Sequence record: MW272540.1
Reading direction: 5' to 3' (one strand)
Length of the DNA stretch: 64,000 nt
The notes below the pieces were generated by a model. The model was given only the letters and a program-made list of their open reading frames with translations. It searched no databases and had not been told where the DNA came from. The stretch's first letter is position 1; each line of letters opens with the position of its first letter. A program made the translations under genes and the position numbers. This document shows, piece by piece, positions 2,816-23,504 of this stretch.

Positions 2816-3160
2816 ATGGAATCTTTCCAATTTAAAAGTGTAGAATCGTTTATTGCTTTTAAGCATAAAAGCGTGGACAATAACAAGATCGGAGACAAAA
2901 TTGGGCTTGGTCCATTTGTTGTTACAAATTTCGTACATGGTAGAATTTTGGGTATTCAAGATCAAGAAGAACTCGAAGAAGAATTTTTCCCAATCTTTGA
3001 TGAGGATGAGGTTAGAATGTATCTGACTAAATTATCTGAAAACAAACAGTCCAACTTAGAAGATTATAAAGTTAACGCACTTAAAAACGAATTACTGGTT
3101 ATAAAAGCAAACTTAACCAAAGAGATTCATAGAATCGACACTCTACTGGATAATATGTAA
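2816..3160 (+). CDS. Hypothetical protein, opposite strand to the baseplate genes
   Basis: ORF with SD (agagg) before ATG 2816. Confidence 0.75.
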   Translation: MESFQFKSVESFIAFKHKSVDNNKIGDKIGLGPFVVTNFVHGRILGIQDQEELEEEFFPIFDEDEVRMYLTKLSENKQSNLEDYKVNALKNELLVIKANLTKEIHRIDTLLDNM

Positions 3161-3435
3161 TGAAACTAATTTATATTGGAAGTAATTATGGTGGTTTCAA
3201 ACAAAATCAAATTCACAATTTTCGTGTTAGACGAGAACTAACTAATTTCCTAGAAAAGAATTTCGATAAAATAGAAAATGAAGATGTTTTGATGAAAGTC
3301 GAAATGAAAGAAACTATTTATTGGGATTTCTGCCCATACGATATGGATGTTGGAAATGGAAAAATGACTTTCGTTTGGGACCTAGACAAAGAAATCCTAT
3401 CAGATTTTATACATCATCGCGCACAAGAAATTTAA
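3160..3435 (+). CDS. Hypothetical protein
   Basis: ORF translationally coupled (TAATG) to the previous ORF. Confidence 0.75.
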   Translation: MKLIYIGSNYGGFKQNQIHNFRVRRELTNFLEKNFDKIENEDVLMKVEMKETIYWDFCPYDMDVGNGKMTFVWDLDKEILSDFIHHRAQEI

Positions 3436-3440
3436 AAAAC

Positions 3441-3467
3441 AAAAGGGAACCCGAAGGTTCCCTTTTT
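3441..3467. terminator. Bidirectional intrinsic terminator
   Basis: aaaagggaacc-cgaa-ggttccctttt between convergent genes. Confidence 0.85.
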
Positions 3468-5286
3468 AGTTAATATTCACAGTAGAACCACTAATCTCAG
3501 TTGTACCAGCAGAAGTGATAAGACTTTGTGCAGCTTGAGATTTATAATTTCCCCCAACTGTCGATGTAAAATTCCCACCGACATTTAGATTATAATCCCC
3601 ATCCACCGAATTATCACAGTTACCAGCCACTTGAGCAGTTAGGTTTCCTTCTATATTGCTATCTACGTTCCCGTTTACAGTTTGAGTAACGTTACCTTTA
3701 ACTATTTGGTCCATATTTCCATGTATAGTTTCAGTAACATTTCCTTTCACAACTTGGGATAAGTTCCCGTCAACTTGTTGAGTGCAGTTACCCATAACAT
3801 AAACAGTCGCATTACCTTCCACAACCGCTTGATAATCACCTTTCACGTTCAAATATTTATTGGCTAAATCTATTTCGAAATTCTCACCATATATCTTAGT
3901 TACTTGACGACCGTCACCAGACCACTCTATAAACGTCCCAGAGGGGTGTTTTCTATGGTATCTCTCAGCACCCGGAGTATCGTCGAACTCTTGAACATGC
4001 CCAGATTCAGACTCGTATACGTGGTTGTATGGGTATTGAGCCCGATACGCACTCTTTGGTTCTTCAAAAAGCAAACCATCATCGCGGGGAACTGGGGGAA
4101 CTGACGGATCTTCTTCATCGTCCAAAGGAACTGGATCGGAAGTGACAGCAACCATCCTCATAAACGACGCAGTTGGAATATTAATACTGTCAGTATCCAA
4201 AGACATGGTTCTTAAAGATATGGGGGGTGTCGGTTCTTGTGGGACCATCACACCATAAGATTCTAGGTTTCCGGTTAACACGATCCTAGAAACTCGATTT
4301 GCCCGTCCGGGGGTTTGTTTAGCCCAGAGTGAATCTAACATCCCCTGTTGGGCTTCCTTCCATCGTTCGTTGTACATATGATCAAGCGTAGTTCTAAACT
4401 TAGCTAGACCACCGGCACCCATCTGAAAGGCCATGTTCTCTAAAGCCATCTGTCTAGACCGGTTAACTTTGACATAAACCTTTCTGATGTTTTCAAATCT
4501 CATCATATCAGATCTGGTTTTTTGGATATCCTCACTAAACAGCTTTGAAACGTCCTCTGGCGATATTGTTCCACCTTTGACAGGATGACCTAGCTGTTGG
4601 GTTAGAATCGCGTCTATACGCGCTACGTCTCTTGTTTTCTCATGAATAATCAAGTGACCAATCCCGATGGTAGGATATCCCAAAGAATCCAAATACCATA
4701 CGTTTCTAACGCCTTCATCACCCTTCAGCATTTTTTCTATGGTGAAATTCGGGTCATCGTCTTCTGGGATCTCATCTATGGGTCTGTCATCTGGTGCAAC
4801 TGCAATAGAAGAGTTTTCATCTTGAGTATATACACCAAGAGGCATACCGTCAATTGATGGGGGGGCACTCCCGTTTATACTATCACCCTTCTGACCACCA
4901 CCCGCTAATATATTCACGTCATTTCCGATATATCTCGGAAATTGACCGAATGGGTCACAAAAACCTTTCAAAGTATTTGGTTGTTGAACATAGGATCCGG
5001 GGATTGTAAAAAGGATAAGACCATCTTGTTTAAATGCGTCCCTGAATATCCCACCAACCCAACTACCTTCAACTAAACCAGTCGGACTATCACCAACCCC
5101 AGATATAGATGCTGATGTAGTTGGTAGAGCCGAGTGAAACCAAAGTAATTCATCTGTTGGGATACCTAGCAAATCATTTTTTGATTTTTGGTCCGTGTGT
5201 ATCCCCATTACACGGACCCTATATCTACCTTGTTTTAGAGGGTCGAATCTATCCTCAACCACCCCAAAAAACCATTCTAAATTCAT
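3466..5286 (-). CDS. gp5: Baseplate hub / tail lysozyme gp5
   Basis: OB-fold WFFGVVEDRFDPLKQGRYRVR, T4-lysozyme domain (DEG..YLDSLGYPTIGIGH), YPYNHVYESESGH and V.G repeats of the beta-helix. Confidence 0.97.
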   Translation of the reverse strand: MNLEWFFGVVEDRFDPLKQGRYRVRVMGIHTDQKSKNDLLGIPTDELLWFHSALPTTSASISGVGDSPTGLVEGSWVGGIFRDAFKQDGLILFTIPGSYVQQPNTLKGFCDPFGQFPRYIGNDVNILAGGGQKGDSINGSAPPSIDGMPLGVYTQDENSSIAVAPDDRPIDEIPEDDDPNFTIEKMLKGDEGVRNVWYLDSLGYPTIGIGHLIIHEKTRDVARIDAILTQQLGHPVKGGTISPEDVSKLFSEDIQKTRSDMMRFENIRKVYVKVNRSRQMALENMAFQMGAGGLAKFRTTLDHMYNERWKEAQQGMLDSLWAKQTPGRANRVSRIVLTGNLESYGVMVPQEPTPPISLRTMSLDTDSINIPTASFMRMVAVTSDPVPLDDEEDPSVPPVPRDDGLLFEEPKSAYRAQYPYNHVYESESGHVQEFDDTPGAERYHRKHPSGTFIEWSGDGRQVTKIYGENFEIDLANKYLNVKGDYQAVVEGNATVYVMGNCTQQVDGNLSQVVKGNVTETIHGNMDQIVKGNVTQTVNGNVDSNIEGNLTAQVAGNCDNSVDGDYNLNVGGNFTSTVGGNYKSQAAQSLITSAGTTEISGSTVNIN

Positions 5287-19280: not shown

Positions 19281-19400
19281 ATGGTTCTGCCCTTACTAAT
19301 TTAGAGCGAGATAAGCCCTCGCAGATGGTGATGGTAATCCGCAAGAAGACCATAAACAAAGGCTAATTGGTGAGAACCACCAGTGGGGGTCGCGACAGAA
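19281..19400 (+). ncRNA. Candidate small structured RNA
   Basis: atggt/accat closing stem, gcgag/ctcgc and tggtg/cacca hairpins, no ORF. Confidence 0.4.
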
Positions 19401-19433
19401 TCATTTAATTATGGATTATTTTGGAATTTTATT

Positions 19434-21312: not shown

Positions 21313-21672
21313 ATGAGAACGTGTACACGATGTAAATTATCAAAACCGTTATCGGAATTTTATAAAAGATCTGGGTTGCGTAGCTCTGAATACTATACAT
21401 GTTGTAAAATATGTCATAGTGCCGCCAACTCGATTAAATTTAATGGATTTAAAGATAAATGTCTTGAATATAAAGGATATTCTTGTTCTAAATGTGGATA
21501 TTCTAAATGTAAGGCGGCTCTTGAGTTTCACCACGTAGACCCTAGACATAAAGATTTTCAAATCTCAAGAAGATTTACCATGAAATGGGAAAACGTCATG
21601 AAGGAATTGGACAAATGTATAGTTGTATGTGCAAATTGTCATAGAGAAATTCATGAAGTTTTAGATGTGTAG
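21313..21672 (+). CDS. Free-standing HNH endonuclease with Zn fingers
   Basis: CTRC..CKIC, CSKCG...LEFHHVDP...CIVVCANCHREIH. Confidence 0.92.
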   Translation: MRTCTRCKLSKPLSEFYKRSGLRSSEYYTCCKICHSAANSIKFNGFKDKCLEYKGYSCSKCGYSKCKAALEFHHVDPRHKDFQISRRFTMKWENVMKELDKCIVVCANCHREIHEVLDV

Positions 21673-21854: not shown

Positions 21855-21873
21855 AATCCATGAGGAAAATATT

Positions 21874-22287
21874 ATGAGTGCTCCCAGTCGTGCGATCTTT
21901 TATCTAGATGGTATACGAGTAAATCACTGTTTCATTAATTGTGGTTGGTTTGAAGATTACGTGACCACCTTGGAACAGATAATCGAATTTGTTGAATCTG
22001 ATAAGTTTGAATTCGATGCTGTTGTTGCATATGGTCGAACTTTCTCTTCCGATCTTAATTATGAATTGACTCTACAGATTGAGTCTGATAAGCTTAAACA
22101 AGAAAAGATGAGAGAAAAATTTAATGGTGTACAAAAGCCACAACCTTTAGATATAAACCAAGTGATTTGTGATCTAGTAAAACGAAATCGTGGTAAAATC
22201 GCAAATGATATTGCATCTGAAATATGTGGTGTTCAACCGATGACTGGTTGTAGCGATGCGGTAAAATATCTAGCTTCTATTAAATAA
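21874..22287 (+). CDS. Hypothetical protein
   Basis: ORF with SD gagga. Confidence 0.8.
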   Translation: MSAPSRAIFYLDGIRVNHCFINCGWFEDYVTTLEQIIEFVESDKFEFDAVVAYGRTFSSDLNYELTLQIESDKLKQEKMREKFNGVQKPQPLDINQVICDLVKRNRGKIANDIASEICGVQPMTGCSDAVKYLASIK

Positions 22288-22295
22288 GGCATAGG

Positions 22296-22489
22296 GCTCT
22301 AGATTCCTAGTCAGTTTCGCACCCCTAGTTGCTGCATATACCCCGACTTTTCCGTGACTGGTGTAAAAAGGTTTGGGTAAACGTATTAAAGAAATCAGGA
22401 GACGTCCTGTGAAATCCTCGGACAGAACTTTGGTAGCCCCTCCCACCTTTGGTGTGGTGATGCGAAGAGTATAGACGGGGTATGAATTT
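22296..22489 (+). ncRNA. Candidate structured RNA (module A)
   Basis: ataccccg (22338-45) / cggggtat (22476-83) closing stem; shares motifs with 22570-23430. Confidence 0.55.
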
Positions 22490-22568
22490 CCGCGTGTAGG
22501 CTAGTCAGGTCGAGGTCGTCTGGTTTGGGACCAGAAAGTCGAAGGTTCAAATCCTTCCACGCGGACCA
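22490..22568 (+). tRNA. tRNA-Pro(UGG)
   Basis: tctgg-tt TGG ga-ccaga, CCA. Confidence 0.95.
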
Positions 22569-22569
22569 A

Positions 22570-23430
22570 TTAAGCACAAAGAACGGGATAACGGCGTATG
22601 TCCCCGGAAGAAGCCAGATAAATCTGGATATCCTGTAATGTGCCTTGAATTACAGGTGGGATTGGTAGTATAAAGACGATATGGTAACTACCCATTGACT
22701 AGCAGTGAGAAACTAGAGGTTACAGTCCTTAACCAAACTACGAACAGGTGGACCGAGATTCTATAGAGTGAGTAACCGGTTGCAAACGGACTCATAAAGT
22801 CGTCAAACCTTAGTACCCTCTCCCGAAAATATCGGTGATGCGACTAAAATGAAGGCGCAAATTGAGAATTTATTTTCACAAAGCTATTGCTTCTGGATTT
22901 AAATTCTCAGATACTCTTAAACATATGAACCAAGAGTATCTGAGAATTTAAGTTTAAAAAGAACTTCCTTCGGGAATGGGGTACATAGACGGGGCGCACC
23001 CCATTGTACCGACGCTTTAAGTAGCCAGTGCGAGAGACTAAAAAGCTGACCCTACCCTCTCCCAGTAATGGTGATGGAGCTTCCTTTCCTGTAATAAGGT
23101 TCCAGTCCGTGACGGGTAAAAGGTTACATAAGGAGACTGCTTGTGAATGACCACTGATTCAAGCCATCACATAAGCGCGTCCATCATGACGATAAAAGGG
23201 TAAGAGAGCAAAGTGAATTCTTGCCGTCAATCTATAGACGTTAAATGTAGACTGGTAAGTCCATCTTATGATGTGATAACGAGGCTTAGATTCCCGTAAG
23301 GGCCTAAGCGTAAAAGTAACGAGCAAGACCTTCTTGTAGGCTTAACTCATTGGGGTGTTTGAGGTTTACATGTGTGGGCTCGGGTAGCCAATGCTATTAA
23401 GTCTGGTGGTGGTGCGACCAGATCGTTTCT
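22570..23430 (+). ncRNA. Candidate large structured ncRNA (GOLLD/ROOL-sized or novel)
   Basis: 860 nt between two tRNAs with no ORF in the track; dense short hairpins with GNRA/UUCG loops; repeated module. Confidence 0.65.
22899..22951. repeat. Perfect 20-bp inverted repeat
   Basis: ttaaattctcagatactctt - 13 nt - aagagtatctgagaatttaa. Confidence 0.95.
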
Positions 23431-23504
23431 AGGGTGTTAGTATAGCGGTATTATGCCGGATTCCAAATCCGTGCGACTGGGGTTCGAATCCTCAACACCC
23501 TGCC
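23431..23504 (+). tRNA. tRNA-Trp(CCA)
   Basis: tt CCA aa loop, agggtgt/acaccct acceptor; abuts tRNA-Ile. Confidence 0.9.

Follow-up and report, generated by a model that had tools for sequence, protein, structure and literature searches.

The 64,000-nucleotide (nt) stretch of DNA analyzed here (the window) is identical to Aeromonas phage ZPAH1 (MW272540.1), a T4-like phage of the Straboviridae (Emmerichvirinae, Ishigurovirus), and contains a cluster of 19 transfer RNA (tRNA) genes, all on the plus strand. Three different noncoding RNAs (ncRNAs) of this cluster, referred to as RNA-A, RNA-C, and RNA-D, share a repeated module that is an irregular helix with a variable hairpin cap. RNA-D is, in addition, a complete copy of a widespread pseudoknotted RNA, the CCUGUAA motif, which is also carried by T4.

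A repeated helical arm in three noncoding RNAs

The original prediction, made from the sequence alone, described a thrice-repeated RNA module with fixed flanks around a variable hairpin that always pairs. The three copies are present where they were predicted, each on the plus strand (Table 1), and three of the four CCYCTCCC octamers in the window fall at them. A strict pattern (CC[CT]CTCC, 5–22 nt, GGTGATG) matches three times, whereas 400 simulations of the window under a first-order Markov model gave a mean of 0.0075 and a maximum of 1. When the pattern was deliberately loosened, five matches stood against 2.3 expected, which is not significant; the signal therefore resides in the exact flanks. 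Every insert can pair as a hairpin (CCAC/GUGG, CCGA/UCGG, and CCA-GUAA-UGG), and in related phages the stems change by compensatory substitutions with pairing retained (CCGG/CUGG in 44RR2.8t; CUGG/CCAG in AhFM11 and IME13; CCAUU/AAUGG in AP1 and CC2). The further shared strings, TCCGTGAC..AAAAGGTT..AGGAGAC and ATAGACGGGG, were likewise found as described. A proposed looser copy at 19312–19334 does not belong to the set: its gap between CCCTC and TGATGG is only 8 nt (GCAGATGG) and permits no hairpin. The covariance model R1 of RNA-D, introduced below, has no match there, and its nearest weak match lies just downstream (19336–19422, 8.8 bits, E 6).

The fixed flanks form an irregular helix, which is capped by a hairpin of free sequence. 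In the nomenclature adopted for RNA-D, the predicted 5' flank corresponds to J1, the hairpin to P2, and the 3' flank to J2. By direct tally, the nucleotide preceding CCUCUC and the sixth nucleotide of UGAUGNA pair in 44 of 44 instances (C-G 26, A-U 17, G-C 1); a column-wise count on alignment A4 was dropped because the J2 columns are misaligned there. In this register the flanks form a C-G and a U-A pair, a C/U or C/A mismatch that is conserved, another C-G pair, and the covarying pair, and a small UC/U internal loop lies below P2. Because the flanks pair with each other, the module is an irregular helical arm and not a pair of free single strands.

The arm sequence is specific to Aeromonas T4-like phages, one T5-like Aeromonas phage, and most Tevenvirinae. 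Elsewhere in the RNA-D family, the flank positions are occupied by GA and GA (T4), G and A (rV5-like phages), or GU and UUGGAG (Shewanella phage KASIA). Since the flanks are replaced in other clades, the RNA-D family is defined by its core and not by its arm sequence, and we read the arm as a scaffold, docking, or protein-recognition surface rather than an active site. The prediction of a protein-binding or tertiary-contact module in a phage ncRNA family is supported in part, namely for a structural RNA module that is reused in several phage ncRNAs, its hairpin covarying both within and between genomes.

The function first suggested for the flanks is not supported. They were proposed to be anti-Shine–Dalgarno (anti-SD)-like and SD-like strands that titrate ribosomes, messenger RNAs, or small RNAs, and it is true that CCCCUCC of copy 1 contains CCUCC and that GGUGAU is complementary to AUCACC near the 3' end of 16S ribosomal RNA. 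However, the flanks are engaged with each other, copies 2 and 3 read CCUCUCC, in which the anti-SD-like CCUCC is interrupted, and other clades of the family hold unrelated sequence at these positions. The last point argues that SD or anti-SD mimicry is not the function, and conservation of the flanks as single strands, which such mimicry implies, was not found across the family. We consider this explanation very improbable.

Known motifs were also compared with the two strands. A kink-turn built on the C/D-box-like UGAUGA was rejected by inspection: the 5' strand CCCUCUC lacks GA, and no register sets GA opposite GA. Readings of UGAUG/CCCUCU as a hammerhead or an 11-nt tetraloop receptor fail on strand order or on the positions of GA.

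Architecture of RNA-D

The RNA-D family adopts a pseudoknotted fold of approximately 100 nt, in which helix Px closes the arm, a bulge on the 5' side of the arm pairs with the 3' tail, and helices P3 and P4 form a second domain. The family order, derived from 37 diverse copies (alignment A3), is Px 5'; 2–4 nt; pseudoknot 5'; J1; the variable hairpin P2; J2; Px 3'; P3 5'; CCUGUAAYAAGG; a linker; the small hairpin P4; (G)GUAA; P3 3'; a joiner (UUACAUA or UUUAAUU); and pseudoknot 3'. P2 varies in length and sequence, with its pairing retained in every clade. CCUGUAAYAAGG is almost invariant and is followed 12–17 nt later by GUAA, and these columns are invariant in 37 seeds. The copy of the N4-like Klebsiella phage Pylas (1471–1554 of its locus) differs in its core (CCUGUAGAAAGG), and invariance of the 12-mer is therefore not strict. 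In ZPAH1, Px, P3, and P4 occur in the family register (AAGC/GCUU, CCUU/AAGG, and GUC/GAC), and the two strands of copy 3 pair at C23055-G23077, C23056-G23076, U23058-A23074, and C23059-G23073, with a C23057/U23075 mismatch.

The nested helices are supported by covariation. The covariance model R1 was built on Px, P3, and P4. Searched against the window, R1 gave a single significant match, at RNA-D (75.1 bits, E 5e-17), which is itself in the seed; the close relative Aswh_1, from outside the seed set, also scored 75.1 bits. In the R1 alignment, 83.6% of cells are paired versus 60.1% after shuffling, and cells with double changes number 201 versus 63. The covariation score is 0.622 versus 0.213 in shuffled alignments (0/500) and reaches at most 0.19 when the partners are slid. 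Double changes are seen at ten of ten helix pairs: in Px, 89% of cells are paired and all four pairs show them, and they occur in both P3 (83% paired) and P4 (73%). At one Px pair, G-U outnumbers every other pair type, an indication of RNA rather than DNA. In an alignment-free test, the strands of each sequence were compared with their own partners and with partners taken from other sequences; the outcome was 2/2000 for P3 and 0/2000 for P4, in agreement with the alignment.

The pseudoknot is detected across the family. Complementarity of cognate strands was 10.6 versus 8.96 for permuted ones (0/10,000, 1/10,000, and 4/10,000 at three redundancy cut-offs), using windows drawn from model columns that carry no structure annotation. 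Tests with wide windows were not significant (584/2000 and 2262/5000), and only the windows taken from the model alignment gave a signal. Covarying examples include ACCG/CGGU, CCAA/UUGG, CCCA/UGGG, AGUG/UACU, CGCCGA/UCGGUG, CACAC/GUGUG, GGGUA/UACCC, and CAAGAA/UUCUUG. The putative ZPAH1 pseudoknot was assigned by homology with AP1 (CCC/GGG), AhSzw-1 (CUG/CAG), and Ahp1 (CGA/UCG).

Three other pairings were rejected. UCUCC/GGAGA, as the family pseudoknot, is found only in Aeromonas T4-like phages, and homology places the 5' strand of the pseudoknot upstream of the flank. For the 5' strand of P3, a pairing with the neighboring YAAGG of the core was discarded because that strand covaries with the one after GUAA. 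A loop–tail pseudoknot, UGUAA/UUACA, is not kept where the tail reads UUUAAUU. Minimum free energy folding of single sequences, plain or constrained, gave inconsistent folds.

These data also bear on whether the repeats could be DNA-level elements, such as protein-binding sites, recombination or homing-endonuclease targets, or duplication remnants without RNA function. The presence of an HNH endonuclease open reading frame (ORF) in the cluster and the strings that RNA-A and RNA-D share in a different order, which suggest past duplication and rearrangement, would fit such an origin. Against it, compensatory changes retain pairing, G-U pairs are frequent and strand-specific, and the motif is 80–98% identical across unrelated phage families in which the flanking DNA is not conserved. 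An explanation at the DNA level therefore has very little probability in our assessment.

Distribution and genomic context of RNA-D

RNA-D is widely distributed and seemingly restricted to phages. A scan with R1 yielded 97 matches in 99 sources, with scores of 39–92 bits. T4 scored 70 bits, and the T5-like phage AhSzw-1, the rV5-like phage EdH4, and KASIA were also matched; R1 separately matched Pylas at 32 bits. Besides Aeromonas T4-like phages, a blastn search with 22960–23165 retrieved T5-like Aeromonas phages (90–98% identity) as well as phages of Klebsiella, Escherichia, Citrobacter, and Shewanella. With the Dhakavirus counterpart of this stretch as the query, 1041 phage records were retrieved, among them T4-type and rV5-like phages, Pylas, a Pseudomonas phage, and Campylobacter phages. 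Pattern scans extended the set to contigs of IMG/VR and metagenomes: a pattern for one subtype matched 43 metagenome contigs, and in 185,579 species genomes of bacteria and archaea it matched only 1 contig. In IMG/VR, loose patterns returned nearly all chance matches, and the core scan returned a mixture of real and chance matches. When six motif-carrying loci were compared with Rfam 15, no family matched at the motif.

The T4 copy lies in the gap between denV and vs.8. In NC_000866, the motif occupies 64792–64912 on the minus strand and overlaps the annotated start of vs.8. The PHROG profile of vs.8 (phrog_1488, 177 positions) covers the ORF only from a downstream ATG, so the first ~40 annotated codons of T4 vs.8 are probably RNA rather than protein.

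In a set of 60 non-redundant copies, a tRNA gene is found within 500 nt of 21, each of which is on the tRNA strand, and within 2 kb of 28. The remaining copies are mostly from Tevenvirinae, 5' of vs.8, and some copies precede a terminator or a tRNA rather than an ORF. Kanagawavirus-type Klebsiella phages (three loci) carry two tandem copies ~40 nt apart, with R1 scores of 59–72 bits (2348–2464 and 2502–2598 in one locus). In KASIA, a group I intron (Rfam 59.8 bits, 587–930 of its locus) with an HNH ORF splits the terminase large-subunit gene ~1.5 kb upstream of the motif.

Public RNA data were consulted for hints of expression; a transcriptome of ZPAH1-infected cells was looked for and not found. 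In three wastewater RNA libraries, contigs cover tRNAs and 23055–23130 (word depth 31, 23, and 510), and the flanking ORFs have a depth of 0. Wastewater RNA contigs with 0–1 mismatches were also found over 22499–22778. Since a 90% identity threshold was applied, only conserved segments can show contigs; the pattern is compatible with stable RNAs and constitutes weak evidence for them.

Possible functions of RNA-D and the arm

We give slightly better than an even chance to a joint reading in which the module is one helical arm of folded RNAs, carried by three different ncRNAs that would be transcribed within the tRNA precursor. Enzymes that trim the neighboring tRNAs would release them as stable small RNAs, as for the T4 species 1 and 2 RNAs. 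RNA-D itself would be trans-acting: its invariant core would bind some ligand, or else a component of the cell or the phage that is conserved in many Proteobacteria, and the arm would serve as a scaffold, docking, or protein-recognition surface.

Several observations weigh against this reading. Alignment A4 was fitted to the model, which favors the structure, and P4 is misaligned in part of the rows (73% paired). In ZPAH1 itself, the pseudoknot has just 3 base pairs (CCU/AGG) and faces a competing 5-base-pair helix (UCUCC 23058–23062/GGAGA 23132–23136), and copy 1 fits the flank–flank helix poorly. The contigs over 23055–23130 derive from AhSzw-1-like relatives and could be explained by conservation at the identity threshold or by DNA carry-over; one run, X11, was flagged as probably DNA. 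Furthermore, the Tevenvirinae motif always lies ~110 nt upstream of vs.8, which is also compatible with a cis-regulatory role.

Such a role is the basis of the foremost alternative, in which RNA-D is a cis-acting riboswitch or leader: the core would bind a small molecule and control the downstream gene (vs.8 in T4-like coliphages) or tRNA read-through, with the arm as a peripheral aptamer helix. In its compact pseudoknotted fold and its roughly 16 invariant junction nucleotides, RNA-D is typical of aptamers, and in Tevenvirinae the position 5' of vs.8 is fixed, with a further conserved hairpin before the start codon. Outside Tevenvirinae, however, there is no common downstream gene; copies are found amid tRNAs, between the genes for terminase and portal, or in front of a terminator. 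The tandem copies of Kanagawavirus-type phages also speak against it, and vs.8 has no known function, so that no ligand is suggested. We regard a riboswitch as unlikely.

A self-cleaving ribozyme or processing element that cuts the long tRNA precursor is a still less probable role. A small pseudoknotted RNA whose junction nucleotides are invariant has features characteristic of ribozymes, and the motif is common in tRNA operons, on the tRNA strand; yet no Rfam 15 ribozyme family matches even at E up to 1, the order of the hammerhead core is unfit, the T4 copy lies outside any tRNA operon, and the RNA libraries show no consistent contig ends. RNA-D resembles pseudoknotted riboswitch aptamers and small ribozymes in its size, the topology of its pseudoknot, its invariant junction nucleotides, and its variable peripheral hairpins; unlike them, it matches no Rfam family and has no common downstream gene and no known ligand or cleavage site.

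The core could alternatively mimic part of a tRNA. CUGUAAY resembles the anticodon loop of tRNA-Tyr, CUGUAAA, and the RNA could act in counter-defense as a decoy for a host anticodon nuclease or tRNA-modifying enzyme. In favor of this, the motif is found alongside phage tRNA genes, its CUGUAAY segment hardly varies among phages that infect many different hosts, and the loop of ZPAH1's own tRNA-Tyr is CUGUAAA; phage tRNAs are known to counter tRNA-targeting defenses (PMC11464382). The structural context does not fit, because the segment lies in a multiloop closed by P3 and P4 and not in a 7-nt loop on a 5-base-pair stem. The sole local pairing (CCU/AGG) would leave a 6-nt loop with GUA misplaced, and the Pylas variant alters the would-be position 37. 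Mimicry of this kind thus appears distinctly improbable.

A more far-reaching proposal can be made tentatively, at somewhat less than an even chance. RNA-D would constitute an undescribed, phage-specific class of pseudoknotted RNA, present in T4 and more than 1000 sequenced phages of at least five families, whose almost invariant core would bind a host factor or ligand shared by many Proteobacteria and act, for instance, as a sensor, a sponge, or a counter-defense decoy. The arm would be a transferable cassette that Aeromonas phages have grafted onto two further RNAs of the tRNA cluster.

Relation to known RNAs

Some bacterial Y RNA-like RNAs (YrlA), a group of structured RNAs that contain tRNA-like parts, are encoded by phages. 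The window contains no match to them, and the only one elsewhere, in AhSzw-1, is weak (24.5 bits versus a gathering score of 69). ROOL and GOLLD are structured phage or prophage RNAs of unknown function, 500–800 nt long, that often lie beside phage tRNA genes. RNA-D shares their character of structured, tRNA-adjacent phage RNAs; unlike RNA-D, which has ~100 nt, they are far larger, and the window has no Rfam match to either. Both form homo-oligomeric complexes and are the subject of PMC12286853.

A 2023 catalogue drawn from IMG/VR (PMC10690425) lists 8,495 covarying motifs, unnamed and some of them tRNA-like, that were predicted in the intergenic regions of phages. The text of that paper does not describe the CCUGUAA motif, which may be among its catalogued candidates. 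The motif was not described in any publication retrieved by full-text searches, whether for sequence strings or for topics. There is a substantial chance that the CCUGUAA motif, akin to the structured RNAs of phage tRNA clusters, represents an undescribed RNA class.

To our knowledge, the only recognized small non-tRNA RNAs of T4 are species 1 and 2, whose function has been unknown for about fifty years. The present data point to one more conserved structured RNA in this phage, part of which lies beneath the annotated vs.8 start, and to the same RNA in T5-like, rV5-like, N4-like, and other phages. The breadth of its conservation and its seeming restriction to phages imply a basic role in infection.

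The arm in RNA-A and RNA-C

In copies 1 and 2, a covarying helix closes an asymmetric internal loop formed by the same two strands, with P2 as the cap. A search of the whole window with R1, filters off, gave no match in 22290–22870; the arm is all that RNA-A and RNA-C share with RNA-D. Copy 1, in RNA-A, is the most diverged copy. Its closing helix is formed by 22427–22431 and 22466–22470, and its hairpin shows the pair types CG, UA, GC, AU, and GU across six phages. RNA-A is confined to Aeromonas T4-like phages, with 72–74% identity to 44RR2.8t, AhFM11, and IME13; an invariant 5' domain, GGGCUCUAGAUUCCUAGUCAGUUUCGCACCC, was found in only three IMG/VR contigs. The RNAalifold consensus of RNA-A contains 34 pairs, 11 of them with double changes.

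RNA-A also contains partial look-alikes of the P4/GUAA/P3' segment of RNA-D (22351–22403 versus 23106–23137) and of AUAGACGGGG (22471 versus 22985), in a changed order; its P4-like part is not conserved in 44RR2.8t. These shared strings suggest an old duplication with rearrangement. A circular permutation between RNA-A and RNA-D was rejected, as no rotation accounts for the order in which the shared blocks occur.

RNA-C, the carrier of copy 2, has homologs in 44RR2.8t, AhFM11, IME13, phage 65, and Aszh-1. The hairpin pairs of copy 2 covary (CG:3 and UA:2; GC:4 and AU:1). A covariance model from six RNA-C homologs, R2, scored 91.9 bits in the window, whose own sequence is in the seed. The T4 species 1 and species 2 RNAs (rnaC and rnaD) are released from the tRNA precursor by enzymes that trim the neighboring tRNAs. 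Like them, RNA-C is a small ncRNA inside a T4-type tRNA cluster and on the tRNA strand, and it shares with rnaD a length of about 100–120 nt and the lack of an ORF. R2 aligns T4 rnaD end to end over exactly its annotated span (3050–3167 of its locus, minus strand), albeit weakly (8.1 bits, E 0.27, in a 2-kb search), and leaves it unmatched under default filters. T4 rnaD and RNA-C both have a 5' hairpin followed by (U/A)AAGUCGUC and a 3' GGCGCA in the same order. The strings UGAUGG and CCCUCU are both present in rnaD; unlike in the module, UGAUG precedes CCCUCU there, and no hairpin lies between them. Kinship between RNA-C and T4 rnaD is accordingly a lead rather than a result. RNA-D belongs to another family: R1 matches neither rnaC nor rnaD, and the T4 copy of RNA-D sits elsewhere in the genome. 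The function of the T4 RNAs is still described as unknown (PMC3014915, PMC9697503, PMC12685909).

In avDM6, the rnaD-like RNA (3428–3499 of its locus) is called 'tRNA-???' by ARAGORN. The string AAGUCGUC of rnaD-like RNAs (22797–22804 in the window) also occurs at the D-stem/anticodon-stem junction of phage tRNA-Pro. The rnaD-like RNAs may be derived from tRNAs.

The tRNA cluster and its ORF-free segments

Two stretches of the ZPAH1 cluster are devoid of annotated genes and convincing ORFs: 22290–22489, directly 5' of tRNA-Pro, and the 860 nt between tRNA-Pro and tRNA-Trp (Table 1). An Rfam 15 cmscan of the window, at the gathering score or at E up to 1, returned only tRNAs and chance matches. 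The plus strand of 22290–23430 contains no strong promoter-like site and no terminator-like site; the nearest promoter-like match is a weak one (9/12) at 22240–22267, just 5' of RNA-A. These data show that phage tRNA clusters contain whole arrays of structured RNAs missed by annotation pipelines, with structural cassettes common to several of them.

Table 1 Features of the ORF-free segments in the ZPAH1 tRNA cluster (window coordinates)
Feature	Position	Strand	Description
RNA-A	22290–22489	+	Conserved ORF-free RNA directly 5' of tRNA-Pro; holds module copy 1
Module copy 1	22434–22465	+	UAGCCCCUC; hairpin CCAC-CUUUGGU-GUGG (22443–22457); UGAUGCGA
tRNA-Pro (UGG)	22490–22568	+	ARAGORN and Rfam; separates RNA-A from the next RNAs
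RNA-B	22570–22756	+	Conserved ORF-free segment without module; 86–88% identity to phage 65 and avDM6
RNA-C (rnaD-like)	22765–22862	+	Hairpin at the 5' side (loop GUUGCAAA); AAAGUCGUC; module copy 2; GGCGCA close to the 3' end
Module copy 2	22814–22843	+	5' strand ACCCUCUC (22815–22822); hairpin CCGA-AAAUA-UCGG (22823–22835); 3' strand UGAUGCG (22836–22842)
Module copy 2 closing helix	22810–22814/22843–22847	+	UUAGU/ACUAA; covaries (CG:4, UA:2)
RNA-D	23041–23141	+	Complete copy of the widespread ~100-nt pseudoknotted CCUGUAA motif; R1 match
RNA-D arm	23043–23082	+	Px AAGC (23043–23046)/GCUU (23079–23082), enclosing pseudoknot 5' strand CCU (23051–23053) and module copy 3
Module copy 3	23053–23078	+	5' strand ACCCUCUC (23054–23061); P2 CCA-GUAA-UGG (23062–23071); 3' strand UGAUGGA (23072–23078)
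RNA-D core	23083–23123	+	P3 CCUU (23083–23086)/AAGG (23120–23123); CCUGUAAUAAGG (23088–23099); P4 GUC-CGU-GAC (23105–23113); GUAA (23116–23119)
RNA-D 3' tail	23124–23136	+	Joiner UUACAUA (23124–23130); pseudoknot 3' strand AGG (23131–23133)
RNA-E	23142–23430	+	Conserved ORF-free segment from RNA-D to tRNA-Trp; ~90% identity to phage 65, avDM6, and Aswh_1 over 23279–23433

The HNH endonuclease ORF within the tRNA cluster was noted in the region of 21313–21672 and 21874–22287. A relative in run X11 lacks ORF 21874–22287 (joint from 21856 to 22284), so that tRNA-Gly adjoins RNA-A. Between RNA-C and RNA-D, a near-perfect inverted repeat of ~20 base pairs (TTAAATTCTCAGATACTCTT ... AAGAGTATCTGAGAATTTAA) is located at 22889–22961; compared with Rfam, it gave only chance microRNA matches. 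RNA-B contains several clean hairpins and has near-identical contigs in wastewater RNA libraries X7 and X9, in which the flanking ORFs have a depth of 0. In RNA-E, a hairpin GUGA(A)UG...CAUCAC and a possible ORF of 18–20 codons (ATGACCACTGAT...) are also kept in AP1 and CC2.

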